64,000 nucleotides of DNA, taken from Oopsacas minuta (lineage: Eukaryota; Animalia; Porifera). Both the position numbers and the translations under genes were made by a program. Location: assembly GCA_024704765.1 (NCBI GenBank), contig JAKMXF010000255.1, forward strand, positions 310,001-374,000, in the 5' to 3' direction. Below are positions 1,272 to 48,779 of the stretch, piece by piece (within the stretch, counting starts at the first letter, position 1; each line of letters opens with the position of its first letter). The notes under the pieces are model-generated. The model made no database searches. It saw nothing but the letters and a program-made list of their open reading frames with translations, and was not told the origin of the DNA.

Positions 1272-4200
1272 CTATTTCGCTCCACTGTCAGTATTCTCAA
1301 TAGCTATCACTGGCTCATCTTTACCAATAGCACATTCTTGTAAAAAATCGCGAAGTGCTGGAGTTTGTTCACATAGCTCCTTTACAGTCAAGCCGTCGGA
1401 ATTGGTAATATCTACAGAAGCTTTTGAGGCTAGTAAAGTGGATGCTATATCAAGACGTTTATTGATAAGTGCTAGGTATAAAGGTGTATCCCCACTGTGT
1501 GTAGTGACATCAATATCAATATATTTAGCGTGTTTTGATAGGAGATATGAGCAGAGAGATGGCTTGTTGTTAATAACAGCGTAATGTAATAGAGTATTGC
1601 CTTCTAATTCTTCTTTTATACTCAAATCAGCTCCACCTTGTAACAGAAGATCACAGCACCGAAACGCATTTTCAGACTCTGATAGTAGATGTATTGGAGC
1701 CTTGCCTTCAAAGTTAAACACATCAGGACAAAGGTCAAACGACATCTTCGAGTCCTTATTGAAATCAGTTACGTAATTAATTAGGTATAATAGACATTCA
1801 GTATGACCTCGACTGGCTGCCAGATGGAAACTTGTATTTCCATTAACATCAAATTTGAATGGATCAGCTCCTGCATCAAGCAGATCTCGTACTGCCTCTG
1901 AATAGTTGAGAGAAACCGCGATATGTAGTGGAGTATGTCTGTAGCAGTTAGACATATTAACCACTATAGGTGCGTGTTTTCTATATACACGTAATAGATT
2001 CAGCATAACCTTTAGAGCAGCTATTTGCTCGGATACAAGAGCTGTGTGTAGTAGAGTATCACTTTGTGTATGCTCATGTATATAGAAGTAGGGGAGTAGA
2101 GGCTCTAATAGGGTTCTGACGTCACCGGTAACTGCGTATCTCTGGGCAGTTTGATACTGTCTATTCATTATACGCTTAGCTGTTTTACTAATGTCTTTCG
2201 CTATGTGTATAGGATTTCTACCGTTAGCTAGAGGTTTTTGTTCAGTTTCTGGGGTATCAGTATTATTTGTAGAATTTTCTGGAAGTTTTTTCTCCAGAGC
2301 AGCAGGAGTAGGAGCTGCAGGTCCGTCTCTCTCTGTGACGTCATTTCTCGCTCCGTCAGTCTCAGTAAATTGTCTATAATCTTCGGTCATAGTGAATATA
2401 TTGAAATCTAGATTATCAGCTTCAGAGCCTAGAGCTTGTATATTGAGTAGGTCAGGCATGCTACTATACAAAGCATCAGATTCTGATACTATTAAGTTGG
2501 TAGTCATATTATTATGATCTGTCTGTGACATGTAATTATCATTTATAGGAAGAGTTATTAGCTGTTGAAAAGCAGGGTCAAAGGTAGCTTGTTGGTAGTT
2601 ATTGACTTGTACTCCTGGTGATTTATTGACGATATATGGACTCTCTGACATACGTTTACGTTTGTTACCGATATAGCCTTTCGTCATTTCATCGGGGAGA
2701 TATCTGAATGTAATAGCATTACTTTCTTCCGCGGTAGTAGGCTTCCGTAGCTTAATACAGCAGCCTATGGATTCACTAGTTGAGGGTCCATTGTAGCTGG
2801 GGGTAGTGAACACGATAGCAACCTACAATAATAGAGTAGATTATATGAGAATATATGCTTAGTTGATAAGTAAAGGGAAATGAAATACAATCAACTCCCA
2901 TTATATCGAAGCTAATTACTTCGATATCACTGATGAAATATGTTCCTTGACGGTTTGAGACCATATTGGCACAATTTACTTGGATATACACGGATATTTC
3001 GACATATCCGTGTTCGATTCAGATTTAACGGGGATTGACTGAAGGTCAAAGGTCAAATAACATTTCCCATAAATGACAGTATGCATTAATCTGGTTATCC
3101 TTGGTTAGAGTACTAACCTGGTGATGCACTTCTGAAGGTTGAAATTCTCCCTTTCCAGTCCATACAATCACTCCATCCTTCTCCTCCTCAAATACAACCT
3201 CTATATCATCTCTTGACACCTTGTCACATAGCAGATACACACTGTCATGACCTTTGACAGATCCTACACACTTATCAATCTTACATATCTTCAGGGAGGG
3301 ACAGTTCTTGGTGTCAGTTATGGGACATGAGAAAGTTGGTCCAATCTCATGCATGGGTTGTCCCTGTTGGTCGCATAAATACCCTCTGAAACAGAGTCTT
3401 ACTGTAGTTAGAGGTTGCTGTTGATCACAAGCTTTTGTAGCTCTGTCTTTTAATGCCTTCCTATCCTCTGGTCTCAATCGTTTGAACAGAACAGCACCGT
3501 AACTCTTCTGTGATTCATCATGATCATCATCTCCCTATAAATAATGACGTCATAATAATAATACAGTCAACTCTCTCGTTATATTGAAGCTCAAGGGACC
3601 GCGATAACTACTTCAATGTATGCGAAATTCGATATAACCCGATGAAATACAATACATGATACTTTGATACTTTGATGGTTTGGGACCCTATTTAAAAAAT
3701 TTCAGATTTCAATATAAGCTGCGGGTATTTTGCTTTAACAGGAGTTGATTGTAGTTAGCAGTTAACTTACAGGAGTAGGATTTCTTTTGCTATGTGCATC
3801 ACTACTCTGTATGTATGCGTGTATTCCGTGTGCTTTTATGAACCATTCTACTGCATACTTGTGTTGTAGTGCTGTCATTACTTCTTGCTTCTTTACATGA
3901 AGTATACTCAGATCTTTCAATCTAACTTCAACTCCCTGTGTGGTTCCATCTCGTATAACACTGACAAATAATCCGTTCTGTACACCTTTCCCTGTCAAAC
4001 TGAATGGATGTGGTTCATCTGATTTAGGAGGGACCAGACTGGCTACAACCACCACATGTCCGAAGTAATTCTCCACACTAACTGATGGATATGACTTACG
4101 GCCTTTCTCAGATTTGGCACCGAGTAGAGCACCATGAGAACTTCCCTCACAGCTGTACCTAAATCTGAATGCACTTTTAGGTTGTTCATTTATCTCTAAT

Positions 4201-4562
4201 ACAGGATGACTATTCTTCATCATAACTACTGGGTTTTCTTTCATAGGAGTCACATTGTATCGGATTATGGGGGGCTCCATTGGATCGGGCATATCGGAGT
4301 GTCCCGTAGAGTGACTACCTGGCACAACCTGGTCTCGAGAAAGAGGATTGCTGTTAGGTGCGGGGCTTGGAGCGTAATAGGGTTGAGGTTGATACTCCTG
4401 TTGTGACTGTGGAAATTGCTGTTGATATGAAATTATATCGCAGTTAGGATTATTATTCATATAGATAGTAGTATTAGGCTGTTGTTGAGGGTAATTAGGA
4501 CTCACTCCTTGATATTGATGTGTCAGGAATACCTGAGCCTGAGGTTGGTTGTAATGAGACAT
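1272..4562 (-). CDS. NFKB: NF-kappaB p105/p100-like precursor (RHD + IPT + NLS + ankyrin repeats), about 919 aa; exons 4562-3771, 3534-3118, 2822-1272
   Basis: FRFRYSCEGSSHG DNA-binding loop, LCDKVSRDDIEV, VHHQ|VAIVFTTP across a splice junction, NLS NKRKR, repeated TPLH/TxLH ankyrin motifs; GT-AG junctions keep the frame. Confidence 0.95.
2886..3043. mobile_element. Tc1/pogo-type MITE family A, NF-kB intron 2
   Basis: TA-CAATCAACTCCC..TTATATCGAAG left end with a matching degenerate right end. Confidence 0.7.
3562..3753. mobile_element. MITE family A, NF-kB intron 1
   Basis: TACAGTCAACTC ... GGAGTTGATTGTA terminal inverted repeats with TA flanks. Confidence 0.8.
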
Positions 4563-4612: not shown

Positions 4613-5610
4613 GAATTTATTTTTACAGATGATTCATTATATTGCAAAGCTATAAGGGAAATATTCTCAACGTATTAATCATACCAGTTTCAATACATAA
4701 AGTATGGCGCAACCAATTTGCAGTTATAGCATACCAGCTTTCATATAGAAGAATTTATGTAAGCATTTCTAATTTGAGTGAAAATAATATGACAGTAAAC
4801 AAAGGGGAAATGTCAATAAATGATGTAATATATTTGTTTAGAATATTATACAAACGGAAAAATCCTATCTTACTAAACATTAATCATAAAATCAATTCAA
4901 TCACTCTAAACAAATTACTTCATAAATAATTAATTGATTAGCACAACTTGCAAATTACTTATCCGAACAATTTCAGTTTGGCTGTAGGTATAATCATACA
5001 CTGACACTCCATTTCTAAGATTTAACAGTTCGATTGCAGATCAGAGGTTATTTCCTTACTTTTCCTTGGTAGGACAGAGATAAAATTTCAAAATTATGAT
5101 TCAATCATTGCGACGTTATTGCATGACTCTTATTGTAACAGATTATTAAATTGGAAAATACATTGGATAAAGTGGATTACTTTTAGAATTTTAAGCGGGG
5201 TCTCAGCAATCAGAGGCTGCAAGTAGTTTCAAAATCGAAAGTTCGATTCCATTATAAGAACACCGGATATAAGCACCATCCTCTGGAAATCTGTTCTCAA
5301 ATATTCCAGCATATTTATACCGGATATAAGAACATATTTTGTTACTCCCCGATCCCCTCCATAATTAGATATATTCGGAAAAGAAATAAATTACTTATCA
5401 GAGGATAGAACTCACAAGAATTGCAGAAAATGCGTACATAACAATTAAGTATAGTTACTACCATGTGTGTATAAATACGTGTATATACAATTCGATAGTG
5501 TCACATAAAAAGCAAAACAAAAGTTACAATAATTCATAAAAACATTAGGTATGTACTGAACCTATATGTAGCCATATTTACATAAGCAGGGGAGAGAGGT
5601 GTTAACTATT

Positions 5611-7577
5611 TCAAAGGACACAATCTTTCTTGATAAATTTCTCAATCGCATCAGCCCAAGCTTGTGCTCCGTTACTAAGATCTTCTAGATAGTATGTACG
5701 TGAGGGGGTGTGTATGAAGAAAGTACGTGGGTTTTTAACTTCAACATTGAGTGCAGTTGACCATGGAATTTCTCCTTTCATCTCGTTACCCACAGGGTCA
5801 ATATAGACCAACCTCGGGGTGTCAGTAAGGACTAATTGACGCTTTTTCGCGAATAAACCCTTTCGCTTTTCGATTTGACCGTCTTTTACTATTATTTCTG
5901 TCGGTGTATATCTACAAAAAAGAATGTATCAAACACTGTATATTTAATTAGAATCAGCAATACATTCATTATTATGTGATTACAAATATTACTATCAATT
6001 AATCTATGAGATAATTCTGTAATCTGTAATCGTCCGTGTAAGCGAATAAACAACTAGGTATAGTACGTGTGTATAATTATGCAACTAATCAGGGATTGCT
6101 AACTTATGCCATGGATTAGAGGCTGCTTGTTTGTCCAGCTGTTCCTTCTTCTCAGGTGTAATCTCTTCACAATCACTAACACTTCCTAAACACATATTCA
6201 GTGAATCCATCTGTAGTTTCATTTCTATATCCGCTTCAGACCTAGAATATCTATTAGCTCCCTTGATGTTAGCTTTACCCTCACTCGTCATAGGGAGGTA
6301 AGGCTGGATTAAAGGAGGTTCCATTTTGTGTAGTTGCTCCCAATTAATACCTATAAACAAATTGAAAATTTTTACGTCCCAAAATCTTAATTTTAATACA
6401 AATCATATGAGAAAGATTTTATAGGGGCAATTGGCTTGGTTCACAATAAACCATTGTATATGTATGCTGTAGACTCACCTTGATAGAAATCATGCATTTT
6501 GAGAGGTTCATATCCTCCAAAGTTCTCTGATCCTAATCTCTTAGTAGGATCTAGTACCAATAATTTTGTAACTAGATCAGATCCCTTCTCAGGAAATCCT
6601 CCAGGTATATTAAGATCAAGTTTTGTAATCCTCTGGAAGACTAGGTATTCTGTAGTAGCATGGAAAGGAGGCTTACCTGCTAACAGCTGATACACGATAC
6701 AGCCCAGTGCCCATATATCCGAGGCTTTACATGCTGATTTAGCTGTTAATAACTCAGGACTAACATACTCAGCAGTGCCTACGAATGAATTAGCTTTACA
6801 GTCCTTCTGACCTGAAAATATGTACAATGAATACACTCAATATAATTATTACGTAATAGTTTATTAATTGCTTATATCTCAATCCTTACCTTCATCTAAA
6901 ATTTTAGCTGTCCCAAAATCAGTTATAAGAATATGCATGTCAGCTCCTAGCAGTATATTCTCCGGTTTAAGATCCCTGTGTATCATCCCTAGGGAATGCA
7001 TGTATTCTAGAGCTACTACAATTTCTGCTGAATAGAACTGTGTAGCTAGTATGTCAAAACATCCTACTCTCTTTATGTAGTGTAAGAGTTCGCCCTTCTT
7101 TGCATAAGTAAGACCAAAGTACAGACGTTCCTTATCTTGAAAAGTGAAGAATAATCGAACGAAGAAAGGGTGGTCGAGTTTTTGTAAAACCTAAATATTA
7201 ATTGTCTTAAATAATTGAAATAAAAATTCGCATACAAATCTAACTTCTTTCTCTCTAGTGACTGTTGGCACTTTCTTGTACTTTATAATGTGTGACTTTT
7301 CGAGTATTTTGATAGCAAATTCTTTACCTGAACACTTCTCTTGTGCTAGAACAACCTCAGAATAAGAACCTGATCCTATTATTTTACCGAAATGAAAGTC
7401 TCCTGGTTTCTTCTTGGTAGCAATTGTATTAGATTGTTCCGATGTCTCTATAGCTTCTCCTGTCTCAGGATTAGCTGTAGCTTGTTGTACTGGTATATTA
7501 TCACCATTAGGATACTCTTGTTCTGGCGATAAAGGAGCTGTTTTAGATTTTACAGTCTCAATATCTGCTTCACTCAT
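5611..7577 (-). CDS. PDPK1: 3-phosphoinositide-dependent protein kinase 1; exons 7577-7245, 7190-6890, 6811-6479, 6350-6104, 5911-5611
   Basis: GSGSYSEV, HRDLKPENIL, DFG, ANSFVGTAEYVSPELL, C-terminal PH domain (KRKGLFAKKRQLVLTDTPRLVYIDP). Confidence 0.96.
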
Positions 7578-7681: not shown

Positions 7682-7811
7682 ATAACCTCCACTAACGGGA
7701 TGCCAGGGACGCCAAAAATGAACCTGTTTGTGGAGGTTCATTCATATGGGACTAGGAATTCTGCTATTTTATCATTCTGTTTCCAGAAGTATCCCGTTGG
7801 CGGAGGTTACA
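7682..7811. mobile_element. MITE family B (AACCTCCAC..GGG TIR)
   Basis: TAACCTCCACTAACGGGAT ... ATCCCGTTGGCGGAGGTTA inverted repeat; related to the copies at 43688 and 52966. Confidence 0.6.
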
Positions 7812-8279
7812 CTCTTAATTTAAAATATCAAAATTCGTCATTCCATTGAAGCGTTACCCATAATTTTTACAGATGTATCTCCTTCAAACATATGATTTCT
7901 GCTTAAAACCAATATTGCATGAATGTCTCTTAAATTATACAAATCAGTAAACCTGAAAAAACCCAATATTTATAACCTCAAATATCCCGTTTGTAAAATT
8001 TTTTGTATTGAATTGTAATACAACATATGTACCTATACACATCTCATGGTATCATTGAGGACAACACAATACAATAAGAATCTATAGCATGATACATAAC
8101 AATACAGTGGCGTTTTACAAGATACCATAATTCAGTATATGGAATAGACATAGAAACAACATTAATACAGTACTGTGTGCTATATGGACGATGGGTTGAG
8201 AGAGAAAGAGAAGTGCTGACATGGATCACATTAAAAACAATATCATTTGAGTTTGTACATTCAAAGTAAAGCCCCCGCA

Positions 8280-9848
8280 CTATAGGTTATCCTGACTCTG
8301 TCTCACACACTTACGGACATGTCTCTTAAATTCTGCTGGAGAATCTCGTACTTCTTTCTAAAACACAAAACATAATATTTGTAAGGCAAATATACTAATT
8401 ATCATATTGTCAATTCATATTACAAATATTCAAAAATCAATTCAGTAGTGTGTAATTAGCATTAAGATATTATTCAATATCTGTATTAATGTTATGGAAA
8501 TATGAGTAATTAACTAAATGCTGTTCAGTAAACGGCCGTTCTAGCGAAGCTCAATGTGTCACGGCAATGAAACCAATATAACTGATTAAAATTTATGTCA
8601 CTTCGAAGTTTGGGACAATATTTGTACAATTATTCAGAATTCGAGATGAGCGGGCATTTAGATTTATCCGTGTTCGATACAACGGGAGTTCGTTGTGTTA
8701 AATTAAGCAATTCCCATTTCAAGTGACCTTCATATTCACGTCGATGTAAACAGAGTTCTAGAATATTCTAAATATAAATATAAATACAGTATGGCTTAAT
8801 AGAGCCCCGGCTAATCTGGAGAAAATGGTCTGGTCCTGATTTGACTCTAATAAGCGGAGTCTACTGTATATATAAGAAGGGCTTGGGCCTTCAAATTAAA
8901 GCATATTTTTAAATTCCCGATTCTGAACTTACAGCAGCTACAATGTTAGCAGCTGATTCCGGATTGGGGTCTGAGAGCATAGAAATTACAGATAAAACTA
9001 CAGATTCCACTGTATGGACAGGAGACCATCTTTCTGAAGCTTTCTCATATCCAAACTTATCTTCTCCAGGTTCATGTAGTATAGAAATACAGACTTCTCC
9101 ATCTGCATAGACTATAGAGATTTATCATAACAAATGGTTCTGTAACACAAATTACAAATTGAATTAACTAACCATTAGGATGCCATATGTTAGAGATAAA
9201 TTTCATCTTTGGTGGTTTGAGGGGAAATTCTTTTGGGAAATTTAAGTGCGCTTTAAAAAAGCCTCCTTCACTGAGATTAGTTTAGGAATACAGCAAAAGG
9301 TATATAGTAGGCACAGTAATATCTAAGCTCAAAGGAACCGCGATGATTACTTCGATTATATGCGGAGTTCCGAGTTCGATGTAACAGATGGAATTTATGT
9401 TACCTTGACGATTTGGGACCATATTTGTACAATTACAGACTTTGATACAAGCTTTCGATAGATGCGTGATCGAGTTGACTGTAGTTTTACTCATGGACTA
9501 GGGATAATAGTGTAAATTGTTCTAACAACAATTCTAACGGGTCAACTGATCAGAAAGTGTCCTATATACAAAGTTAATAAATCAAATACAAGTCAGGAGC
9601 GATATTTAAGTTAATCTCAGCGGTCTAAAAAGGATACTATAGTGTGTCTGGAGGTCCAACTATCAGTACTTCCCACACAAACAGATTATTATCATCCACT
9701 AGTCCAGCAGAGAATCCGTCTACAGAGCTTCTCTGGAGATCTATAATAATATCATAACACAAATCTCCTATATAATGTTAATACAATACTCACCTGCTAG
9801 CTGTTTCTTCAAGAGGAGAGCTCCTTGATCTAAACCTTTACTAGCCAT
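8280..9848 (-). CDS. UBE2G1: Ubiquitin-conjugating enzyme E2 G1-like; exons 9848-9794, 9740-9638, 9270-9173, 9111-8933, 8357-8280
   Basis: Manual splicing gives [76 protein letters not shown], with the active-site Cys and the acidic loop; absent from the ORF track because the exons are short. Confidence 0.93.
8524..8696. mobile_element. MITE family A (degenerate), UBE2G1 intron 4
   Basis: Shares GAAGCTCAA, TTTGGGAC-ATATTTGTACAATT and CCGTGTTCGATACAACGGGAGTT blocks. Confidence 0.65.
8785..8868. mobile_element. Short TA-CAGT MITE, UBE2G1 intron 4
   Basis: TACAGTA ... TACTGTA ends. Confidence 0.5.
9289..9483. mobile_element. MITE family A, UBE2G1 intron 2
   Basis: AAGCTCAAAGGAACCGCGAT core; GAGTTGACTGTA right TIR. 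Confidence 0.7.
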
Positions 9849-10003
9849 TGCACCAGGAATACAAATAAAGCTAATCACAAATTATACATATAATAATCAC
9901 AAATACAAAATTATTTGTATTAATACACGTATATTAAATGAATTGTCAGAATTATTTTGGGAGTTCCATTGGTTGATAAATAGAAATAATATTTGTGTCT
10001 TAA

Positions 10004-10145
10004 CCGATTACGGCCGAAGTGTTACATTCGTAACGAAAAGGACTATTATAATTTACCACTTCGTTTTAACCAATTCCCGAACCCAAATCGAGATTTTAGC
10101 ACCTTTTCGAGGTCATAAATCACACATTTTCCCGGTCGTATTCGG
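10004..10145. mobile_element. TTAA-flanked (piggyBac-like) miniature element
   Basis: TTAA|CCGATTACGGCCG ... CGGTCGTATTCGG|TTAA; a partial second copy lies at 30243-30321. Confidence 0.65.
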
Positions 10146-10353
10146 TTAATTAACACACGATAAGTGGTCTAACGATTTATCTAGAAATTGTCAAAGGGGG
10201 GAAAAGGTTATCAGGAAATGATTTCTGGAATTTAGGGAATAATATGTCAACAAAACTCCCATCAGACATATACTCAATGCATATGTCACAGAAGAAATTG
10301 AGATTTCGACTAGCTGTAAATGAGAATTCACGGATTATCAATTTCAAAATATA

Positions 10354-10511
10354 CACAGTCAACGCCCGTTATATCGAACATGGATATAGGGAAATACCTG
10401 CTTATATGGAAGTCCCCAAACCGTCAACTTAACATAACTTTTATGTGTATTTTGAATTCTTATCGAAGTATCGCGGTCTCTTGAGCTTCGATATAACGGG
10501 AGTTAACTTTA
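10354..10511. mobile_element. MITE family A, reverse orientation, UBE2G1-CHMP4 spacer
   Basis: CAGTCAACGCCCGTTATATCGAA ... TTCGATATAACGGGAGTTAAC TIRs. Confidence 0.75.
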
Positions 10512-10753: not shown

Positions 10754-12191
10754 TTATGAAGCCCAGTCAGCCAGGGCAGCTAGATCTCCATCATCTCCTC
10801 CAGCTGGTATCTTGGATTTCACTTTGGGTAGTGGTTTGGCTAAATAAAAGTAGTAACATTCAAATGGTATACAGTGATATGGTACTATAAATAGAAATTT
10901 ATCTTTGAAAAATAGTCTTATCCTGAAATTGTGGAATAATTGAATTCGTTCATTATTTTACCGCGGATTAGTGTCAGGATTGCTCCTGGAAGTTGATTAG
11001 GTGTTTTCACTACCTCCTGATTATACGATTGGGTCTTAGTATCAAAATGTAAAATTCTATGAAATATTGGACCTATAAGCGGACCCTGAACCAGTTTTTC
11101 AACCGGACCAAAATTCCATGACAGCTCGATTATTGCATTATTCATTGCTTCTCAATAATTTCACAAATACACAGGTTTCATCCATGGTCGTGGACGTGTT
11201 CATCTAATTACAATTGACTTACCTTCATCTAATTTGGGTACTTCTGGTAGAGCTGATGTATCTACAGTCAGTAAGTTCTCTTCTAGCTCTTCATTTAACA
11301 AGTCATCTAGTTCTGCATTCAACTCATCCTAAACAAACAATAATAATAATAATAATACCATATCGTAAACAAGTTATTTATAACAACAAATACTTACTTC
11401 ATCAATATCGTTACCAAATCCTACAGGATTAGATATACACTCTGATATCTCCTGAGCTAGCTGAGTCTGTTCATCTATGTCATCCATCATTTCATGGATA
11501 TCATCTACATCTCTATAAGATTCATACTTAAATTCAAACATGTATTTTGATATTTGCGTACAAATATCTCTATGGATATTCTAAACCAGCGCTCCCAACC
11601 TTTTTCACCCATGGTAGACCCTAATCGTACCAATTTTAACACATTCTGTGGTCCCTCCCAATCCCAGAGAGTGTAACACAAATTCTGAGATCCGGTGGGG
11701 AACCACTGGGCTAAATATATTAATGAATAGCAGAGTAACATTATATTCAGCTTACAATTGTTTGTGCGCGTTTTTCAGAGCATCAGCAGCAAATTTCATG
11801 TTCTTCAAAACCTCAGTATTAGTGTTTGCATTCTCTAGAGCTTCTCTCTGGAACTCTATCGTAGAGAGAGTACCGTCTATCTGAGTAAGTTGTTTCTCCA
11901 GTCTCTTCTTACGTTTTAGAGCTTGAATAGCTCCTACACACAATTAATGTATTAAAAATCTTAGAATTAGCACTAAGCATAGTTAATTGTACGTATGTAT
12001 ATTGAATTACCTCGCTTATTCTTTGTACCGTGTTTCCTAGCAATAGCAACCTCCTCGTTAATCTTCTTCTCAAGAAATGCAGATTTCTTCTCTAACATCT
12101 CTTCTGTAGATCTGAGCTTAGTAATAGCGTCTTCACTGGTCGGAGCAGAGCCCTTCTTTGAGCCGAATATTTTAGCCAAAGCAGAAGTCAT
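10754..12191 (-). CDS. CHMP4: ESCRT-III Snf7/CHMP4; exons 12191-12011, 11933-11756, 11512-11398, 11328-11223, 10839-10754
   Basis: ALKRKKRLEKQLTQIDGTLSTIEFQREALENANTNTEVLKNM and C-terminal DLAALADWAS (ALIX-binding-type helix). Confidence 0.94.
11587..11708. mobile_element. hAT-type MITE, CHMP4 intron 2
   Basis: CAGCGCTCCCAACC ... GGGGAACCACTG ends; degraded 8-bp flanks (ttctaaac/ggctaaat). Confidence 0.5.
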
Positions 12192-27594: not shown

Positions 27595-27595
<1 letters not shown>

Positions 27596-27636
<41 letters not shown>

Positions 27637-27637: not shown

Positions 27638-27645
27638 AGAATATT

Positions 27646-38370: not shown

Positions 38371-38431
38371 TTTTGTAATATATTTGTGTAATACAATAAT
38401 AAACAAATAGTCTAATTTCAATTGATATTTC

Positions 38432-38501: not shown

Positions 38502-38776
38502 TTTGATGAACTCAGCCCCAAAAACCGGACTTGAAAACGTACAATATTCGCAAGTTTTTTCAGGGACTTAGATTCCATTTTGTATTGGAAAAATTCTTCT
38601 AATAGTTCACGTATTAGCAAAGGAAATTCGTGTAAAATACTCTTGCTAATAGGCGATCTCCACGGTATAATTCATCAAAATCAACATATATAAATGCAAT
38701 GGATAACTACAATAGCGATAAAATAACAACAAACAAAATTCCAATAAATACAAATCCTATCTACTGACAGTTGATA

Positions 38777-39466
38777 TTACGACTTAACAACAAACTTATT
38801 AACACAACTACGTAGTAATTCTATAACAACTTTAGGATCATCAGCCTTAACAACAGCAGTACCAGCTACTATAAGATTAGCTCCTGAAGCAGCAGCTATC
38901 TCTATCGTATCTTTATTAATCCCACCATCTACCTCTATATTTAATGCTTTATTACTCTTACGCAGCTGTTCTATTTTAGGCATCATTTTATGTATAAAGC
39001 TCTGTCCACCAAATCCTGGATACACTGTCATGATTAGTATCAGATCTACTTGTTCAAGAAAGGGGAGTACTTTATCTATAGGAGTATCAGGCGATACACC
39101 TATACCTACTTCCATGCCCTTAGCTCTTATGAGTTTTATCAATTCTACCGGGTTCTTAGCAGCTTCTATATGGAATACATAACTATTAGCTCCAGCATCA
39201 CACATGTCATCTACCCATTTCTCAGGCTCTGATACCATCATGTGCATATCAAAGTATACATTAGGTAGTCTAGAACGTAAACATTTCACTACAGGAGCCC
39301 CGAAGGTTAGATTAGGTACAAAGTGTCCATCCATAACATCTAGATGTAAGTAGTCAGCTCCAGCTGCTACTAATTTCTCACATTCTTGAGCTAGACAGGA
39401 GAGATCTGAGTTCAAGATAGAGGGTCCTATTTGACAACTGGCACACCCTGATGACTTCAATGCCAT
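38777..39466 (-). CDS. RPE: Ribulose-phosphate 3-epimerase, intronless
   Basis: IGPSIL, LHLDVMDGHFVPNLTFG, DMHMMV, MTVYPGFGGQ, EVDGGI. Confidence 0.97.
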   Translation of the reverse strand: MALKSSGCASCQIGPSILNSDLSCLAQECEKLVAAGADYLHLDVMDGHFVPNLTFGAPVVKCLRSRLPNVYFDMHMMVSEPEKWVDDMCDAGANSYVFHIEAAKNPVELIKLIRAKGMEVGIGVSPDTPIDKVLPFLEQVDLILIMTVYPGFGGQSFIHKMMPKIEQLRKSNKALNIEVDGGINKDTIEIAAASGANLIVAGTAVVKADDPKVVIELLRSCVNKFVVKS

Positions 39467-39535
39467 TTCTATATTGTAGCAGGTAGCTAGCAACCTAGTA
39501 CACATATTATTATATTCCCTAACTGCGTATGAAGG

Positions 39536-39685
39536 TACAGTCCACTCCCGTTATATCGAACACGGTTATATCGAAGTCTTGCACAAATATGGCCCCAAAC
39601 CGCCAAAAATAGAATAAATCTCATCGGTGATGTTATATCGAAGTAATTATCGCGCTTGCATGTGCTCGATATAACATGCATTGTA
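39536..39685. mobile_element. MITE family A, reverse orientation, RPE-SDF2 spacer
   Basis: TACAGTCCACTCCCGTTATATCGAAC left TIR; degenerate right end. Confidence 0.7.
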
Positions 39686-39781
39686 TTGACTAAATCAAGT
39701 AAATCAATTCAATTCCCTAGATAACTAAAACAGCGTATAAACAGAATCAAATTCCTACAAATAATAATTATCTAATATAAA

Positions 39782-40429
39782 CTATAAATCATCATGGATA
39801 TGAAATTCTGACTCTTCATCATATGTTATCATCACTCCCTCTTCTACACTCCATTGGTTGTCCTTCTGTTTCTTGGCGTATCCACACACCTCCTTCTGTC
39901 CTGCTATAGGTCTACCGTACGTATCCCCAGGTACATGAAGATACATTTCAGTCAAGGCGTGTTTGAGTCTGATCTTATCTTTCTTCTTCCAGAATTTTCC
40001 AGAACATTCTAGAATCCAGTAGTCACCATTATCTCCTTCACTATTCTCTCCGAAGCAACTGACTTCCTGATTATGACTGAGTGGAGACGTAAAGTAGTGA
40101 CTATGTAGAAATAGCTTAGTAGCACTGTGCTGTAGTACTACCTTCTCACCACAGGATAAACGGGATCCTCTGATACACTGTTTATCATGAGGAGCTCTCA
40201 GGATCCAGTAGCTGTTGACGTCATCCATAGCACTGATAGCTGTAACAGTTTGTTGTCCACTGCCACTACCGCCACCGTATTTAACTTCGTGTGAATGAAG
40301 TCTTACGTTATGTCCGTAGTTGAGCAGCTTTATGAGAGAGCCACACGTCACGAAACTATCAGCTGACAAACTCAGCTTTATTTGTGTGAATATTAAGCAA
40401 AGCAAAATGAAGTATATGCTAAGCCTCAT
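39782..40429 (-). CDS. SDF2: Stromal cell-derived factor 2 / SDF2L1-like MIR-domain ER protein
   Basis: Signal peptide, VTCGSLIKL, RLHSHEVKYGGGSGSGQQTVT, LHSHYFTSPLSHNQEVSCFG, C-terminal HDDL. Confidence 0.93.
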   Translation of the reverse strand: MRLSIYFILLCLIFTQIKLSLSADSFVTCGSLIKLLNYGHNVRLHSHEVKYGGGSGSGQQTVTAISAMDDVNSYWILRAPHDKQCIRGSRLSCGEKVVLQHSATKLFLHSHYFTSPLSHNQEVSCFGENSEGDNGDYWILECSGKFWKKKDKIRLKHALTEMYLHVPGDTYGRPIAGQKEVCGYAKKQKDNQWSVEEGVMITYDEESEFHIHDDL

Positions 40430-40734
40430 TCTTTGAGTTATACTGTAAGTCAAGTAGCTGGAATTTAGATGTGAATTAACTTGGAAAGGGGCTAGTATGT
40501 AGAATCAAGTAAAGTGAAAAGATTACGAATTATTGAAACTTTCGTACATAGAAATATGTTATTCTGATTTTGGATACAGTAAAATTTTCGTGGTCAACTA
40601 ATATATAATTTGAATAATGTATCCTTTACCACACTATTCAATGGATGAGTTAAATTGAAATATTCTAAAATATCTTTTTCAACATAATGACATCAGCAAC
40701 TTATACTTGATTGATTTTTACCAAATTTAGAAAT

Positions 40735-42990
40735 CTAAGAATCCCATCTCTTCTTCTTCTTAGGAGGAGGTTTGATGAATGTTTCGTTGTTTAGTGTTGT
40801 TTCTCTACTAGGAGGTATGTTTGATTCCTGTTTTGATTCTAAATCGAATCTAGATTTTCTCTGTGGAGGTTTATCTGTATTATTAGGAATAGTAGTTGTA
40901 TTATGTTTTATTGTAGAAGTAGAAGCTAGATCTGATCCAGCAGATGCCTTAATAAACTTAGTCTTGTATTGTGCTTGGTACATTTCCATTCTACTGGTGA
41001 GAGGACCGCTTGGTTTATCAGGTGGGGTAGGAGTAAAATCAGTATCAGTAGACCCCAGTCCAGGACGTACCCTCTTCCTATCTTGCATTTTCTTACCTTT
41101 CCCATACCCCCATACACGCCTACTTTTCCTGAATTTAGAGATTTGCATAGCTAGCTGCATCAAGGGAGGAGGAACATCTTGGTTAACCCCCTCTAGATTC
41201 CTGACTAGACCCCCAGCAAATACCTTATCCTTCCCAGTTATCAGGGTGTACGCATCTCCCTTTTCACCAGCTCTACCTGTACGACCTATCCTGTGTGTAT
41301 GAGTATCAATAGTTTTAGCTACGTCATAATTAATTACAGTTCTAACATGTGGTATGTCAAGACCACGAGAAGCTACATCAGTAGCGACTAGTAACGGCTC
41401 TTCTTTCCTCTTAAACTTTCCAATAACTCCATCCCTTGATCCCTGGTCCATATCACCGTGTAGTAGTAGAGCAGTGATGTCACGAGTTTTGAGTTTACTA
41501 ACCAATATCTCAGAATCTGCCTTCTTTGTTACAAACACAATTACACTGCCAATAGAACATAGACTGATAATTTGTTTAGTTAACCAGCTCCACTTGTCTT
41601 CATCTCTCTCTAACATAATCACATGCTGAGTAACATCCTCATTGGCTTCTCCTCCCACACCAACACATATACGTATAGGATCTGTGAGTGCTTCTCTTGC
41701 CAGGGCTTCAACACGTTTGCGGAAAGTAGCGCTGAACATTAGAGCTTGTCTGTCTGGACGTATATTGAATACAATGCTTCTAACCTGGCCCTCAAATCCC
41801 ATATCAAACATCCGATCTGCTTCATCTACAACTAGAAATGTAGTTCTTAAAAGATTTGTGCATTTAGACTTTACAAAATCAATCATTCTTCCTGGTGTAG
41901 CTATCACTATTTCCGGTGCCTGCTTCAGGGCCTTAGTCTGTTCCCATCTACTCACACCCCCGTATATAGGACAACAGCTGATATTATAAGGCTTACAGAA
42001 CTTCTTAGTCTCATGATAGATCTGCTGACATAGCTCACGAGTAGGTGCTAGAATTAAACCAATAGGACCATCTCCTTCCTTCATCTCTTCCTGATCCAAT
42101 ACGTGCACAATAAGAGGTATCACATAACCTAGTGTCTTACCAGATCCAGTCTGTGCTATGCCTATAAGGTCACGTCCCTCTAGAGCAGCAGGTAACGCCT
42201 GCATCTGTATAGGGGTAGGCTGTGAGTACTGACTCTTAGTTAGAACAGAGGTCAGCTCATCACTAAGACCCAGATACCCGAATGAAATACAGGGGTGACA
42301 CGGTTTGGCGCCAGAAACTCTAAGTCCGTAGCACTCTCTAAGTGCATATACTTCCTTATTAGTGAGATTAGTGACGTCATCGTGTATCTGATAGAAATTC
42401 TTCTCAAATGGTTTGTAGTCTATATCCTCATGATTAACTCTAGGCAGAGGTTCTACCAGTTTAGGTTTCTCAGGAGTAATAGGAAATCCGTCGGAATCAT
42501 AATCAATCTCTTCATCATCTGAACATACAGGAGGTAGTCTGCTAGCTTGTTCCTCTAGAAATTGGAAGTATGTCTCTTGGTCGTCAGCTTGTTCTATGTC
42601 TTCGCGTACTGCTTTGTGTGATTTGCTGCTGTTCTCTACTCCAGCTTGTTTTGTTACCTGATCCTGTATTGAAGTCATGAATGCATCCAGAGGATCTTCC
42701 TCTTGACTGTCATCTGATCGCTTTTCCGATTTTTCACCCTCTCCTCCTGGTTCAGAATCACTGCTAGAGTGATTGAAGTATTCTTCTTCTGTTTGAAAAC
42801 GAGGCTGTTTCCCTGGCATAGGAGTAGTAGGGTGTACATATGTAGTAGTGTTCCTATCTCGTGTGTACTGTGGAGGAGGGGGATACTTCCTCTTACCGGT
42901 ATCAGAGAGAGGATTTGAACACAATTTGCTTTCTTTAGCAGAAGGGAAAGAGAATCCTGAAAACCCCATACCACGTCGTGCACCAGACAT
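40735..42990 (-). CDS. DDX42: DEAD-box helicase DDX42, intronless
   Basis: EDPLDAFM, AQTGSGKT, PTREL, DEADRMFDMGF, SATF, HRIGRTGRAG; C-terminal KKKRWD. Confidence 0.92.
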   Translation of the reverse strand: MSGARRGMGFSGFSFPSAKESKLCSNPLSDTGKRKYPPPPQYTRDRNTTTYVHPTTPMPGKQPRFQTEEEYFNHSSSDSEPGGEGEKSEKRSDDSQEEDPLDAFMTSIQDQVTKQAGVENSSKSHKAVREDIEQADDQETYFQFLEEQASRLPPVCSDDEEIDYDSDGFPITPEKPKLVEPLPRVNHEDIDYKPFEKNFYQIHDDVTNLTNKEVYALRECYGLRVSGAKPCHPCISFGYLGLSDELTSVLTKSQYSQPTPIQMQALPAALEGRDLIGIAQTGSGKTLGYVIPLIVHVLDQEEMKEGDGPIGLILAPTRELCQQIYHETKKFCKPYNISCCPIYGGVSRWEQTKALKQAPEIVIATPGRMIDFVKSKCTNLLRTTFLVVDEADRMFDMGFEGQVRSIVFNIRPDRQALMFSATFRKRVEALAREALTDPIRICVGVGGEANEDVTQHVIMLERDEDKWSWLTKQIISLCSIGSVIVFVTKKADSEILVSKLKTRDITALLLHGDMDQGSRDGVIGKFKRKEEPLLVATDVASRGLDIPHVRTVINYDVAKTIDTHTHRIGRTGRAGEKGDAYTLITGKDKVFAGGLVRNLEGVNQDVPPPLMQLAMQISKFRKSRRVWGYGKGKKMQDRKRVRPGLGSTDTDFTPTPPDKPSGPLTSRMEMYQAQYKTKFIKASAGSDLASTSTIKHNTTTIPNNTDKPPQRKSRFDLESKQESNIPPSRETTLNNETFIKPPPKKKKRWDS

Positions 42991-43305
42991 TAATAATATT
43001 TCTAGAATTAATATTACAAAATAGACGTATAAATATATTTCTGTATTACCGCATTAGTTACAGTAAATAGCCGATACGGGAACATTTCTCTAAATATTCA
43101 AAAAGATCACACACTTAACTACATCTTTACAACTTTGATAATGCCAACAACAGAAAGAATATTTTCAGATATAGCCATGTAAAATGGTTGAGCCACAAAA
43201 ATTGTGATAATTAATTAGATTTGTGGTAAAAGTACAGAGTAGTCCATTGATGAAAAGCATTACTAAAATCAACTAGAAGCAATATTGAATATAGTATAAT
43301 ATATA

Positions 43306-45196
43306 TCATGAAGTTTCTTGATGGGGTAAGTCCTGCTTAGCAGCAGTTAAACCAGTTTGGAATGCAGGATTAATAGGTGCAGGTATGAAGGAATCATGTG
43401 ATGCTACTAATTCTTTGACAATTTCAAAATTATTAGGACCAGCTTGTTTCCAAATAGTTACCCGTCTCTCATTGGTAGAAGCTATCAACATGTCTCCTGT
43501 AATGTTCCAATGTACTCTCCATACTTCTACTACTTGTTTGTCAACCTCACGTAAGGGGATATGTTGGAAAGTATAATGAAAATCTAAAATAAATTAGAAA
43601 TTTGTAAAGAGTTGATCTAGAGACTGATGAACTATAGACTAGGTATTACTAAAGGAAAAAGATCAATCTGTATTCATAAGAGAAATGTACAGAGGAACCT
43701 CAACACACGGAGTGCCAGTGACGCCGAAATATGCCATCCTATTTTCCCGATTATGAAGGTTCATTTAATGGGACAAAAAAATTATCACTCGTTTCCACAG
43801 ACCCCTTTGTGGAGGTTTCACGGTACACTTAATTACCAGATTCCGCAGAACTGCTATTTTCAAGAGGCTTAATCTTGACAACATAGAGTCCTATACCTCC
43901 TACAGCTAGAGAATGGTAGCTACGTCCCATCCAGTTAGCGAAACTAATATCGTTAACTTTACGGAACACATTCTCAGTCTGTTCATCTAATATAGATCTC
44001 CATTTATTGCTGGGTCTAAGAAGTATTACAGAACTAACTACAGATTATATTTATCCAAATAATGCTCTTATCATCAATGTATAGTAAATAGGAGACAAAG
44101 TTAAATAGCAGAATATTCAAGTGAAATATTAAAGTATTAAAGATTATTGTAGTAAATTAATGGTCAAATATGTGGAACGGCATTATTCTATTAAGGAAAT
44201 TCAGATGATAAATAGAGTTTTCTCTTTGTATTCCGAGCATATGCAACGGCAAATTTTTATTGAATTCCCTGAAATTGTTAGCTGTAATTACAGTTCTCCA
44301 AAAGGGATTATCATTTGTACCAAATTCATTATATGAAATCAAAGAATATTTGGATAAAGTCTTAAAGAAGTACATCAGCCAGTATGTACTACAGACGTCT
44401 TATCTGAGTTATATTGTACAACATAGATAAGAAACTAACACGTGTAGCTGATATATTCCGATGTGTTTAGCTGCAGCATTTGGGTCATCTGATCCTACAG
44501 CCAGGAGCATATGGAATAGACTAGACTGAGACCAGCAGATAGAGGAAGCTCCATTTAAACTCTGAAACTCATGAGATAGAGTCCAGTCATTCAATCGCAT
44601 AATATCCTTAGCTTCATATATACGTACATACCCATTATAAGAACATGATGCAAACTTTAAGCCATAATAATGTGGAGCAAATCTGACGTCACTCACACTT
44701 GATTGACTGTCAAGTCGTGTTATCTCTTTATCCCATTGAAGAGTATGCTTTCCTAAACAAAGATTAACTTAAACATCCAAACGTGTTAAATTTCGCGTTT
44801 GCCACCTGCAGAATCAATTCTAGTATTCTCCTGCCATATGCTGACACAACAGTCAAATGAACAGGTTACCAGCAGTTGTCCAAACTGTGGGTGTGCCCAG
44901 TCAATCCTCCAGATAGGACCCTTGTGTGCTGGGAATTTAGTAGTACACTCCCACTGACCATCAGCCTTTGTGTCCCAAACACAGACATGTTGATCAGCTG
45001 AACATGTCGCTAATCTCTGACCTGTTAAATATTTTATAAATCTCCCAAAGTGCATGTAACAGTTGGTTATTCAAATATGTAACTAACCACTAAAGTCAAA
45101 AGTAGCGTCGTGTATGGTATCTACATGAGATGTTGGGATAACTGTCTTTGTAGTACCAGACTTTTTAGGTTCTAAAATCGGGGTTTCCTCTGCCAT
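43306..45196 (-). CDS. SEH1L: Nucleoporin/GATOR2 subunit SEH1; exons approximately 45196-45088, 45021-44806, 44752-44440, 44015-43837, 43583-43306
   Basis: GQRLATCSADQHVCVWD, WAHPQFGQLL, DVRFAPHYYGLKFASCS, VWRVHWNITGDML WD40 pattern. Confidence 0.88.
43688..43825. mobile_element. MITE family B, SEH1L intron
   Basis: TACAGAGGAACCTC ... GGAGGTTTCACGGTA. Confidence 0.6.
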
Positions 45197-45556: not shown

Positions 45557-48500
45557 TCAAGGGTCTCCATCAGGCCAGTTAGAACCCTTCCATAGCTTAA
45601 CATTTCCTACACTCCCAGCTGAGAGAAGACATGAATGTTCATCAAAGAAATCTATAGCATACACAACACTCTTATCAGTACCGTGTTGTAATGACGTCAC
45701 TATTTCTTGTGTCATTAAATCCCAAAAGTATATCTTACCCTCTTCAGAACCACTAACAACGTATGCGTCTGTAGGACTGAGAGCTATACCAACTTTATAA
45801 TCTTTGTTCTTGTGACCTAAAATAGTTAATGTGTGTAGAGATGTACACTGCACAATTATAACAACAAATATTATATCGTGAGATTTACATGACATGGATA
45901 ATGTAAGTGGTAGACATCGGAATTCCACAACTCTCATTCATTGGAATTTTATCACAGACATAAAATTTGATATTTGCGTGTATTTTGGTGACTGATGTAA
46001 CAAATGGGATAAACAACCTATATACGTATAACTAAAACTTAAAACCTAATTACAATATCTAGAAAGGAACATCTGTTCACTATAAGTCACAGGCCAAAGC
46101 AGTACATATCAGAAAGTTGTTGATACAGTTTCATCTTTTGCATAGAATGTCGGTATATCTTCTATTGGAGAGGTATTGATATCGAAATACAGTCGGAATA
46201 TTAGATCCTCATCTGACGTTTCAACATATGTTTCTCCAAAACATTCACTTTGAACGCCTATTTTCAAATTATAATCCAATGAGAAAACTGTAACATCAGA
46301 ATTGTTTGGTTTATTCTTGTTAATCGAAAGAATACGACATTCTGTAATAGTAGATCTGTTACATAATTTTCCATCATAATCACCTGGTATCCTCGTTATT
46401 TTGAATGATATGATCCGTTCGATGCAATCTACACAAGCAAATACCTGTAGTTTGTAACCTTGGACATAGAAATCGGGACCTATGATATCTAAATCAGATT
46501 GAGAATAAAATGGTTTATACAAATGCACTTCACAACCATCTAGGTCTTTCTTGCATTTAAGTTTCAGCTCCATTTCATCAAGTCTCATTCCTAGAAGTTC
46601 TACCTGCTCACGTAACATGTTAATATGCATTATATGCTGATCCTTGTTATGTTCTGGTAATTCCTCTCGTTTGATATAAGAGTCACTACATTCTGAATAT
46701 GAATTTCGAATAAAATGGCAGAATAGACGAAATTTCGGACACTCCTCGTTATGCTCTTCAATAATTTCTCTTTCCATAACTTCACCACATTCATTAGGAC
46801 AGTCTACCAAGAAATTTGGACATTCATCCAAATGTGTAGCTAAATCTCTTGCTAATCCAGTGCGTTGGCAATATTCACAAGATATGTTTCGCATTGAACA
46901 ATAGTAGGTTTCATGCATAGCAACATCTCCTCTTTCATTAACTTGGTTACATTCTAGACAAAGTTCGAGAAAATATTGGCATTCATGTAAGTGCATTTCA
47001 GCTTCAGACAAACTTCCCTTCCACTCACAACCTCTCAATAAAGGACATCGTATTTGCAGTTTGGAAATAGAGTCCCTGATTTTTACAAGAGAATTAGGAT
47101 TGGTCGATTTGGAACACCCTTTACAAGTTATGTTTGAAGAATCTAGTACAGCTTCTCGTATAATACCCTCATATATGGGACATATTACATAACTCCTCTC
47201 CAATTCTGTTAAGTTTACAATCAAATAATCTTCTTTATACCCACAGTACCTCAGAAAAGGTTTAACTACATAGAGTAGGTCATTGCTACTATCCGGTATT
47301 TCCTCATTAGACAATAAACATTTCGCCATATTTTAGAATTTTATGAAAACAGTAATTTGAATTAATATGATATCTGAGCATATTTAATCCACTAATAAAA
47401 GTGATGCCAAATGTCAGGCTGTTTAAATAGAGGCTATACATACTTGTAGGTGTTTGGTTACAGTTTAAAGTAGACTTCCAGAGGATCGTAAAGACACACA
47501 GCGTTATCAAATGTGTTCCAAACAAGGAATGTTTAAGAACACATAAATTTGGAAGGTAAATAAAACTCCCTCGATTCCTCCTATCAGGAATTCACCTAAC
47601 CTACAATACATTCTATCTCACCTTTGTACACACATAGTGTATCTCCATTAGTTTTATCCAAAAGTCTTATATTGCTGTCTAGAGCTGCTGCTAGAATACA
47701 GTGTCTATCATGAGAATGTTTAGCATGTGGTACAGGGTGGTTAATATTAAAGAGAGATAATTCTCCTGCTCTTATGTCATAGCAACGTATTGTACCGTCA
47801 ATACTTGAAGTTAGAATCTCATGATCTGTGATGTCTATGCTAGATACACTGTCTGTTGCTTCATCTAGTACCTAAACGATCAATTCCATAAAATTAATCA
47901 AGGGACCAGTACAACAAATTGGATGGTACAGAGAAATTCGGCAACGGGCATTTTTCTCCAAATACGTACAGTCGAAATCGGGTTATTTCGTCGTTTGGGA
48001 AGTGCAATCAAATGGATAAAACAACCGATTTCGACTGTACTTGTATTCAGAAAAGGTCACACCCTGGACAACTAAATTTTTTAAAATTTTGAGCACACAT
48101 CAGCTGGACGAATATTCTTTGAGATATAGCAATGCAAAGTGCTGATCCACAAATAATCGCGGTTAAATAATTCCTAAGAACACAATCTCGTTATATTCGA
48201 CTGTTCGCAATAATCTATAAGATTGCTGTTTATATATGAGACACTTTAACCACCAATTATATAATGAATAACAAGTAGTACAATATGATTAGTACACTAA
48301 AGAATTTATAGAACAAGTATCGTATAAAAATTATTAGATGAAACAAGATATACCTGTATGGGATCAATCGCCTTTGATCTACAATCCCAGATTCTAACTG
48401 TCTTATCATAAGAACCAGATATAGCTATAGAAGAGTCACTATTGAATAATACACAATTAACACGATGCTCATGACCTCTGAATTTGCGTAGAGGTTTTCC

Positions 48501-48779
48501 AGTAGATACGTCTGTAAGTAGAACAAGTTTATCAATTCCACAGCTGATTAGGGTAGCATTATCGTGTGAAGCTGCGGCACCTAACACCTCTTGGGTATGT
48601 CCGGAATATTTCTTAATAAGTTTAAGTTTATGTGGATTCCATAATGCCACCATTTTATCAGCTCCACACGTGAGACAGTAGTGTCCGTCTTTGTTGAAGG
48701 ATACAGCCCGCACTGGACCTTCATGTGCCCCGCTTAACTCTCCATGTAGACGAGATGGTATTTTGTCCTTGAATAGCAT
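45557..48779 (-). CDS. WDR83: WD repeat protein 83 (MORG1); exons 48779-48354, 47871-47622, 45816-45557
   Basis: HEGPVRAVSFNKDGHYCLTCGADK, SGSYDKTVRIWDCRSKAIDPIQ|VLDEATDSVSS, YK|GHKNKDYK join in frame. Confidence 0.92.
46109..47329 (-). CDS. TRAF-type zinc-finger protein (degenerate RING, TRAF fingers, coiled coil, divergent C-terminus), intronless, nested on the same strand in WDR83 intron 2
   Basis: CPLLRGCEWKG..HLHEC, CEYC..HLDECP, CPNECG..HNEECP finger repeats. Confidence 0.8.
   Translation of the reverse strand: MAKCLLSNEEIPDSSNDLLYVVKPFLRYCGYKEDYLIVNLTELERSYVICPIYEGIIREAVLDSSNITCKGCSKSTNPNSLVKIRDSISKLQIRCPLLRGCEWKGSLSEAEMHLHECQYFLELCLECNQVNERGDVAMHETYYCSMRNISCEYCQRTGLARDLATHLDECPNFLVDCPNECGEVMEREIIEEHNEECPKFRLFCHFIRNSYSECSDSYIKREELPEHNKDQHIMHINMLREQVELLGMRLDEMELKLKCKKDLDGCEVHLYKPFYSQSDLDIIGPDFYVQGYKLQVFACVDCIERIISFKITRIPGDYDGKLCNRSTITECRILSINKNKPNNSDVTVFSLDYNLKIGVQSECFGETYVETSDEDLIFRLYFDINTSPIEDIPTFYAKDETVSTTF
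47967..48039. mobile_element. Short TA-CAGT MITE, WDR83 intron 1
   Basis: TACAGTCGAAATCGG ... CCGATTTCGACTGTA perfect 15-bp TIR. Confidence 0.75.

Follow-up and report, generated by a model that had tools for sequence, protein, structure and literature searches.

Are the genes of a long co-oriented array in a glass sponge transcribed together, as operons, or each from its own promoter? This question is raised by a stretch of 64,000 nucleotides (hereafter, the window) of the Oopsacas minuta genome (GenBank assembly GCA_024704765.1, contig JAKMXF010000255.1, positions 310,001 to 374,000 of the forward strand), in which the initial annotation had reported 21 consecutive minus-strand genes at 1272-48779 and had proposed that they constitute one or several eukaryotic operons. 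The gene content and the common strand of this run were borne out by Pfam scans, by the loci of related species and by the NCBI gene calls, and both of its boundaries are as described, i.e., divergent from a G protein-coupled receptor gene at the WDR83 end and convergent with RRM2. In the order of transcription, the first half of the run comprises WDR83 (with a TRAF gene in its intron), SEH1, DDX42, a MIR/SDF2-like gene, RPE, a small open reading frame (ORF) of 82 amino acids (aa), an M16 peptidase, POLD1 (with PNISR in its intron 1), a class II aminoacyl-tRNA synthetase and an NHL gene, and the second half comprises SIRT, FBXW7, a CNK-like gene, TPR, PNKP, CHMP4, UBE2, PDK1 and NF-kB. The small ORF at 38122, which had been doubted, is a real gene, conserved in three relatives and strongly expressed.

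With a probability of about one half, the best explanation is that this co-oriented run is composite and holds a few short operon-like units, whose transcripts are resolved by a spliced leader. What stands of the operon proposal is trans-splicing at DDX42 and the presence of spacer RNA for two gene pairs; the whole run, on the other hand, is not one conserved unit, and no two-gene molecule was seen. According to this explanation, each gene would yield its own mature mRNA, with a 5' end set by leader trans-splicing and a very short 3' untranslated region. In the shortest spacers, RNA polymerase does not seem to halt; running on, it would enter the next gene, and the leader would cap and rescue the downstream RNA, which is the way in which known operons function. 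The tightest groups would then act, at least partly, like the small operons of tunicates or nematodes. The candidate small units are MIR-RPE-small ORF-M16 and PNKP-CHMP4, perhaps also SEH1-DDX42 and perhaps SIRT-FBXW7. Ordinary promoters most likely lie in the 0.5-1.5-kb spacers and in an RNA-free gap before MIR, so that the run as a whole would not be one transcription unit.

The evidence on transcription comes from window 37300-43200 (5.9 kb of the 47.5-kb run), to which four of the five public sequencing runs that contain this DNA were aligned; the RNA derives from one sample. Two of these runs, X1 and X2, are DNA of flat depth, one X1 contig being identical to the window over 15 kb, and they are probably the source of the assembly. 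Run X5 is low-coverage DNA of a close relative. Run X4 is RNA from the same sample as the DNA, its depth ranging from 0 to about 16,800, and the GT..AG intron of M16 (37400-37668) is spliced out in it. Five minus-strand genes fall within or reach into this stretch: the single-exon helicase gene DDX42 (40735-42990; Pfam DEAD and Helicase_C, with homologues carrying the name DDX42), the MIR-domain (SDF2-like) gene (39782-40429; Pfam MIR), the ribulose-phosphate 3-epimerase gene RPE (38777-39466; Pfam, with its ATG set by orthologue alignment), the small 82-aa orphan gene (38122-38370; supported by RNA depth and by conservation in the relatives' loci L001, L002 and L011) and the M16 presequence-protease-like peptidase gene (34404-37958; Pfam and spliced RNA contigs, with a TAG acceptor abutting the ATG). 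Each of them has a separate mature mRNA in X4, with depths, in thousands, of 1-3 for DDX42, 6-17 for MIR, 6-12 for RPE, 10-12 for the small ORF, whose RNA is among the most abundant in the stretch, and 3-4.5 for M16. That MIR, RPE and the small ORF, all downstream of the RNA-free gap, reach comparable depths is only suggestive of a shared promoter.

Leader addition was seen directly at one gene. Among the contig loose ends listed, an X4 RNA contig reaches the AG at 43003/43002, which is preceded by ttct and lies 11 nucleotides (nt) before the ATG of DDX42, and then continues in 11 non-genomic letters, AAAAAACTTAC (RNA strand). These letters were searched for in the whole window as a cis 5' exon or a leader gene, with no relevant match. 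Upstream of the junction the depth is 14.7 vs. about 1500 downstream, a fall of about 100-fold. DDX42 has its 5' end at a spliced-leader junction, and RNA that still carries the outron is rare. Judging from the ends of contigs and from bin depths, the small ORF, MIR and M16 are probably trans-spliced as well: the mRNA of the small ORF would begin at the AG acceptor 38431/38430, and bin arithmetic places the 5' end of MIR near an acceptor 62 nt before its ATG. DDX42 is the only gene at which the leader itself was shown, in an RNA view limited to the genes in 37300-43200.

The second line of evidence concerns RNA that runs through the spacers. The depth is about 1950 at 38767 but only 78 at 38759, so that the poly(A) site of RPE is placed 16-17 nt after its stop codon. 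An RNA contig of the same depth of 78, at 38403-38789 (minus strand assumed), carries the RPE poly(A) site, the whole spacer and the acceptor of the small ORF; its ends were matched to the poly(A) site near 38760 and to the acceptor 38431/38430 by way of 31-letter words (k=31), from which we infer both correspondences. This RNA would have escaped both cleavage at the RPE 3' end and trans-splicing at the small ORF, and would extend through the spacer without a break, i.e., it is a candidate polycistronic precursor. Genomic-DNA contamination was considered as its source and ruled out, because another spacer shows a depth of 0 (40506-40646). The distance from the poly(A) site to the acceptor is probably about 110 nt between the small ORF and M16, and about 330 nt between RPE and the small ORF.

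A similar RNA was found in another glass sponge. The contig L014, taken from the Logan assembly of SRR29297746 (a fifth hexactinellid), contains PNKP, a spacer of 212 nt and an uninterrupted CHMP4 ORF of 223 aa. The CHMP4 gene of O. minuta is interrupted by introns at three positions, which it shares with two other genomes, and since the gene is intron-less in L014, this contig must derive from RNA. It links PNKP, through the full spacer, to an already spliced CHMP4, although, being a contig, it is not a proven single molecule. In the window, PNKP is a single-exon gene at 12380-13642 (Pfam PNK3P; orthologues 70-79% identical), located 188 nt upstream of CHMP4/Snf7 at 10754-12191 (at least 3-4 introns; Pfam Snf7, with exons drawn via the L014 protein and the stop codon confirmed). 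As for RNA across adjacent genes, which the initial annotation had named as the check to be made, contigs bridge RPE and the small ORF in O. minuta and PNKP and CHMP4 in the relative, whereas the DDX42-MIR spacer is RNA-free.

The third line of evidence is the spacing itself. All twelve stop-to-ATG spacers that had been listed (163, 188, 204, 304, 305, 310, 315, 315, 360, 406, 462, and 523 nt) were reproduced, and the six remaining ones measure about 470, 602, 604, 905, 1048, and 1512 nt. Ten co-oriented pairs of O. minuta are separated by 163-406 nt, and the tightest pairs of the relatives by 80-230 nt, a shortness that is retained in four or five species. The spacer between SEH1 and DDX42 measures 129-177 nt in the relatives and 315 nt in O. 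minuta, that between DDX42 and MIR 90-166 and 305 nt, that between MIR and RPE 110-147 and 315 nt, that between the small ORF and M16 80-158 and 163 nt, and that between PNKP and CHMP4 212-229 and 188 nt, respectively. The first three are about twice as long in O. minuta as in the relatives, in the case of MIR-RPE at least partly because a multi-copy repeat was inserted. A spacer of 80 nt has to accommodate the upstream 3' end as well as an acceptor abutting the ATG, and so it leaves little room for a separate promoter, unless this lies inside the upstream gene.

The repeat is MITE-like (resembling a miniature inverted-repeat transposable element) and occurs in spacers and introns, at window 39536-39654 and 38550-38592; its core, TTCGATATAACCGTGTTCGA, is also present at 2998-3017, 8658-8677, 16957-16976, and 51325-51344. 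DNA depth rises up to 17-fold over it, and many contigs carry it with variable internal deletions. A second, GGCGTCCCTGGCATCCCGT-like repeat is located at 7695-7713 (upstream of PDK1) and 43707-43725 (in a SEH1 intron).

Signals expected in such spacers were sought as well. A YAG within 15 nt of the ATG is present in 63% of 49 spacers of all species vs. 35% at control positions, the spacers being orthologous and therefore not independent, and pyrimidine enrichment before the ATG-proximal YAG was not found. Regarding promoter-like conserved blocks, alignments of three to five species revealed in the short spacers only a block after the stop codon and scattered short matches. The same lack of conservation is seen in the WDR83-proximal half of the divergent spacer, where a promoter must be located, and it is therefore no evidence against promoters. 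The GC and TA skews of spacers and introns, compared as a footprint of transcription, were uninformative, as the introns are nearly without skew, and the Rfam and tRNA scans of the whole window returned nothing.

The post-stop block has the form TAG, 0-4 bases, TTTG(A/T)T, and is located 17-45 nt after many stop codons. It follows the stops of WDR83, SEH1, MIR, RPE, M16, TPR, and PNKP (e.g., at 43275-43264 and 34373-34365), and recurs in L001, L002, L008, L009, and L011; in several spacers nothing else can be aligned clearly. In the case of RPE the block comes shortly after the putative cleavage site, and no AATAAA was seen in the 3' regions that carry it, so that it may be a hexactinellid 3'-end (downstream) signal.

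The loci of the relatives changed the picture of the run as a whole. In the assembly ERZ25072730 its genes form two blocks, on the same strand of one contig, about 33 kb apart. Block A contains SEH1, DDX42, MIR, RPE, the small ORF, M16, POLD1 with PNISR, a gene of a 408-aa membrane protein, the aminoacyl-tRNA synthetase gene, NHL and a thioredoxin gene, and block B contains SIRT, FBXW7, CNK, TPR, PNKP, CHMP4, UBE2, PDK1, and NF-kB. About 10 kb of the 33-kb gap were read, and they hold an ABC transporter gene on the opposite strand, followed by four genes on the same strand as the blocks and by at least six on the opposite one. In ERZ25072740 the blocks do not share a contig. The order and strand of SEH1..NHL and of SIRT..NF-kB are conserved in ERZ25072730 and ERZ25072740, those of SEH1..M16 also in ERZ23487945, and this although the orthologous proteins are only 70-79% identical. 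The 21-gene run is therefore, among the species compared, an O. minuta-specific juxtaposition of two older, conserved blocks. The conserved order is by itself weak evidence for operons, because microsynteny is generally high in glass sponges.

Taken together, the tight co-oriented spacing, its conservation, a leader at one gene and a precursor that is suggested, not proven, do not establish operon membership. A number of observations weigh against it. In the DDX42-MIR spacer, X4 had zero depth at each of the five positions sampled within 40506-40646. DDX42 shows an about 5-fold lower RNA depth than MIR, its downstream neighbor, and neighboring genes differ up to about 10-fold. The bridging RNA of O. 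minuta amounts to only about 1% of the mature mRNA level and fits leaky termination equally well. Contigs join overlapping reads and may merge separate RNAs, and assemblies of compact genomes often fuse neighbors; neither a single read nor a single molecule was observed to extend over two genes, and the RNA evidence spans only the above 5.9 kb of the run. Several spacers are 0.5-1.5 kb long, and those of O. minuta have taken up repeats and roughly doubled without obvious harm. Two relatives have an opposite-strand membrane-protein gene between WDR83 and SEH1 and no TRAF gene there, and in one relative an M16 intron contains an actin gene of the opposite strand. Finally, only about 4% of the long cDNA reads of the glass sponge Aphrocallistes vastus carried a leader (PMC10282587).

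Many of these observations are what would be expected if there were no functional operons at all, a serious competitor which we consider nearly as likely as the short operon-like units. Each gene would then have its own compact promoter, maybe overlapping the upstream 3' end, the leader would only trim 5' ends, and the spacer RNA would be due to leaky termination or to a long outron, as is common in highly compact genomes; co-orientation would persist because inversions are rare and because head-on and shared-promoter layouts are disfavored with tiny spacers. The RNA-free gap between DDX42 and MIR, together with the excess of MIR over the upstream DDX42, and the low level of the bridging RNA fit this explanation well, as do the many spacers of 300-1500 nt, the insertion of repeats into spacers, the gain and loss of genes within the run (opposite-strand insertions in the relatives included) and the generally extensive microsynteny of glass sponges (PMC10282587). 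It has to account, however, for spacers of 80-130 nt in the relatives, which must fit a 3' end, any promoter and an acceptor, and for uncleaved, un-trans-spliced RNA across a complete spacer in two species; moreover, read-through RNA with a working acceptor is expected to give some downstream mRNA anyway.

The short operon-like units may also be taken further. It is conceivable, although we regard it as rather doubtful, that glass sponge genomes are organized in conserved directional clusters, in which tight neighbors are co-transcribed and separated by trans-splicing, to which an unusual 3'-end signal is coupled; they would represent the first operons of Porifera, kept across deeply diverged hexactinellids.

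We next weigh chance. The initial annotation had estimated that random orientation would give such a run about once in 2^20. A run of 21 is indeed rare, as about 0.008 runs of at least 21 genes are expected under independent orientation of 16,413 genes (0.03 when only the 19 non-nested genes are counted). Nevertheless, the estimate was overstated, since in the relatives there are two blocks, of at least 12 and at least 9 genes, and blocks of these sizes are expected by chance about 4 and about 32 times per genome, respectively. The run might then be an extreme of chance, i.e., two moderately long same-strand blocks joined in O. minuta, with the longest run picked; the fusion is specific to this species among those compared, and the window was selected from many. 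We consider this improbable, as block order and strand are kept across species at 70-79% protein identity, the shortest spacers are conserved as short, and other same-strand runs lie near the run in ERZ25072730, such runs looking common in these genomes.

That the whole run is one kinetoplastid-style unit, extending from the strand switch between WDR83 and the receptor gene to the RRM2 boundary, is very improbable: 21 genes with one divergent and one convergent boundary, and the presence of trans-splicing, would fit it, but transcription is not continuous (depth zero at 40506-40646, about 1% of the DDX42 level upstream of DDX42), neighboring RNA levels are unequal by the factor given above, in the relatives the genes form two distant blocks, both separated and interrupted by genes of the opposite strand, one species lacks WDR83 at the head, between the receptor gene and SEH1, and in the remainder of the window the strand changes at nearly every gene.

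Operons resolved by a spliced leader occur in nematodes, tunicates, flatworms, chaetognaths, Hydra, and kinetoplastids. If confirmed, those of O. minuta would be a known kind of system, new for sponges, to which the single-leader operons of tunicates and the operons of nematodes come nearest. The tunicate operons with a single leader resemble the run in being co-oriented, functionally unrelated housekeeping genes of a compact genome, with the leader added at an AG just before the start; as far as seen in O. minuta, there is likewise one kind of leader, and no specialized SL2 is evident. In contrast, the intercistronic regions of tunicates are mostly below 60-100 nt and often absent (PMC7986045), vs. 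163-1512 nt in O. minuta and 80-230 nt at best in the relatives, and polycistronic precursors are only candidates in the O. minuta run. With nematode operons the run shares separate mature mRNAs and a rare precursor, and the poly(A)-to-acceptor distances of about 110 and 330 nt are within nematode medians. Unlike in nematodes, there is no sign in O. minuta of a dedicated downstream leader or of a U-rich Ur element, and nematode operons typically have 2-8 genes, not 21; the RNA-free gap and the unequal levels in O. minuta argue for internal promoters. Kinetoplastid units are also long same-strand arrays bounded by strand-switch regions, with trans-splicing coupled to upstream 3'-end formation, but they hold tens to hundreds of genes and cover nearly the whole genome, whereas the genes flanking the O. 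minuta array alternate in strand, and this array includes one RNA-free spacer and is not conserved as a unit.

The published distances give a scale for these spacers. Known operons have medians of about 30 to about 1000 nt overall, a range that includes the 80-230 nt of the tightest pairs, with median intercistronic distances of about 100 nt in C. elegans, 517 nt in Trichuris and 785-981 nt in Pristionchus, and the distance cut-offs used for the operons of Ciona and Oikopleura were below 100 nt (PMC7986045). According to the same 2021 paper, operons had not been reported in hexactinellids or other sponges (PMC7986045), and our searches found no later literature report of sponge operons. The O. 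minuta genome measures 61 Mb, with 16,413 genes and a mean intergenic distance of 2 kb, and the paper describing it does not mention trans-splicing, operons or gene orientation (PMC10280926). The precedent among glass sponges is A. vastus, of the same animal class, in which a leader of about 37 nt is joined to mRNA 5' ends; that paper contains no operon analysis and prints no leader sequence (PMC10282587). Should the short operon-like units be real, they would strengthen the view that operons evolve whenever a compacted genome also has trans-splicing, and would offer a peculiarity of gene expression to be studied in a syncytial animal. The annotation of hexactinellid genomes would also be affected, as the public one fuses, splits or truncates three genes of this run.

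The gene list was compiled from Pfam scans of the ORFs, from tblastn searches against orthologous loci of four other hexactinellid assemblies, from direct reading of the sequence and, for part of the region, from the NCBI gene calls. The window is AT-rich (about 35% GC), with long, densely packed ORFs mainly on the minus strand. No plus-strand genes were found inside the run, the plus-strand ORFs 9829-10429 and 19101-19409 having no Pfam match, and no coding conservation across species was seen in the long spacers on either strand.

At the upper boundary, the first exon of the seven-transmembrane receptor gene lies at 49353-49805 on the plus strand, divergent from WDR83 (NCBI gene call, Pfam 7tm_1; orthologue in L001 and L002). 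The genes that follow are, within the run, all on the minus strand. The WDR83-like WD40 gene, the head of the run in O. minuta, is located at 45557-48779 (Pfam WD40; exons contiguous in L001 and L002), and the TRAF-like gene nested in its intron at 46109-47329 (Pfam zf-TRAF; no TRAF match at this place in L001 and L002). The SEH1-like WD40 gene, which is the first of block A, lies at 43306-45196 and was delimited by sequence reading, Pfam WD40 and orthologous exons. POLD1 (27646-34093; Pfam DNA_pol_B, exon 2 acceptor read) has its exon 1 at 34093 to about 33655 and its other exons from about 31655 downwards. The translation of exon 1 contains the POLD1 N-terminal motif, and because this exon truly belongs to POLD1, PNISR (31879-33564; Pfam PNISR) is nested in intron 1 on the same strand; the nesting is kept in the relatives, with PNISR at the same position in L001 and L002. 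A (CAA)n microsatellite follows immediately on the stop codon of POLD1 (window about 27590-27635), with similar tracts in L001 and L009. The class II aminoacyl-tRNA synthetase, of the D/K/N type, is encoded at 25713-27122 (Pfam tRNA-synt_2), and the NHL-repeat gene, the last O. minuta gene common with block A, at 23963-25108 (Pfam NHL; L006 orthologue 71% identical).

Block B begins with the sirtuin gene SIRT at 22329-23360 (Pfam SIR2; no record matched its protein in an exact look-up), which heads the same block in L008, followed 204 nt downstream by FBXW7 at 19671-22124 (Pfam F-box-like and WD40). The SAM and PH ORFs that come next are not two genes but parts of one CNK-like gene at 15315-18158 (SAM, a PDZ-like stretch and PH; Pfam SAM_1 and PH). 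The supposed 258-nt spacer between them would be a GT..AG intron, as judged from the alignment of three species: it starts with GT in all three, has an AG acceptor about 49 nt before the supposed ATG, and these approximately 49 nt are conserved like coding sequence. The TPR protein gene is located at 14105-15010 (Pfam TPR_1; a conserved neighbor in L008-L010). An apparent gap at about 8050-9848 is filled by a multi-exon gene of the ubiquitin-conjugating enzyme UBE2 (8050-9848, with an approximate 3' end and the ATG at 9848; tblastn with L008 ORFs, Pfam UQ_con). The PDK1-like kinase gene lies at 5611-7577 (kinase domain and PH_3; Pfam Pkinase and PH_3 across four exon ORFs), and the last gene of the run, coding for an NF-kB p100-like protein with an RHD and ankyrin repeats, at 1272-4562 (Pfam RHD_DNA_bind and Ank); it also ends block B in L008. 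The lower boundary is formed by the 3' part of RRM2 at 18-683 on the plus strand (Pfam Ribonuc_red_sm, E 1e-70), convergent with NF-kB.

Two non-coding blocks were observed near the end of the run. One of 52 nt, at window 5469-5517 and about 94-142 nt after the PDK1 stop codon, shows 92% identity with L008, far above the coding identity, and the other, at about 4811-4889 upstream of NF-kB, shows 74% identity with the same locus. The relatives, in turn, carry extra genes, namely the actin gene in the M16 intron (L001 15544-16692, minus), the gene of a signal-peptide/transmembrane protein between WDR83 and SEH1 (L002 6484-7791, minus) and the gene of the 408-aa multi-pass membrane protein between POLD1 and the aminoacyl-tRNA synthetase (L006 5074-6300, plus).

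The public annotation (NCBI gene calls for window 30735-52204, locus L003) differs from the above models in several places. It fuses POLD1 exon 1 with PNISR into one 709-aa product, splits WDR83 in two around the nested TRAF gene, gives DDX42 an internal methionine as its start (489 of 751 aa) and lacks the small 82-aa gene. The protein encoded by the latter is lysine-rich and 38-55% identical in the three relatives (L001, L002, and L011); it is conserved only among hexactinellids, and no Pfam or Atlas relative was found for it. Within DDX42, an A/T difference at window 41359 occurs at about half depth both in the DNA runs and in the RNA of the same sample, i.e., the site is heterozygous and both alleles are expressed.

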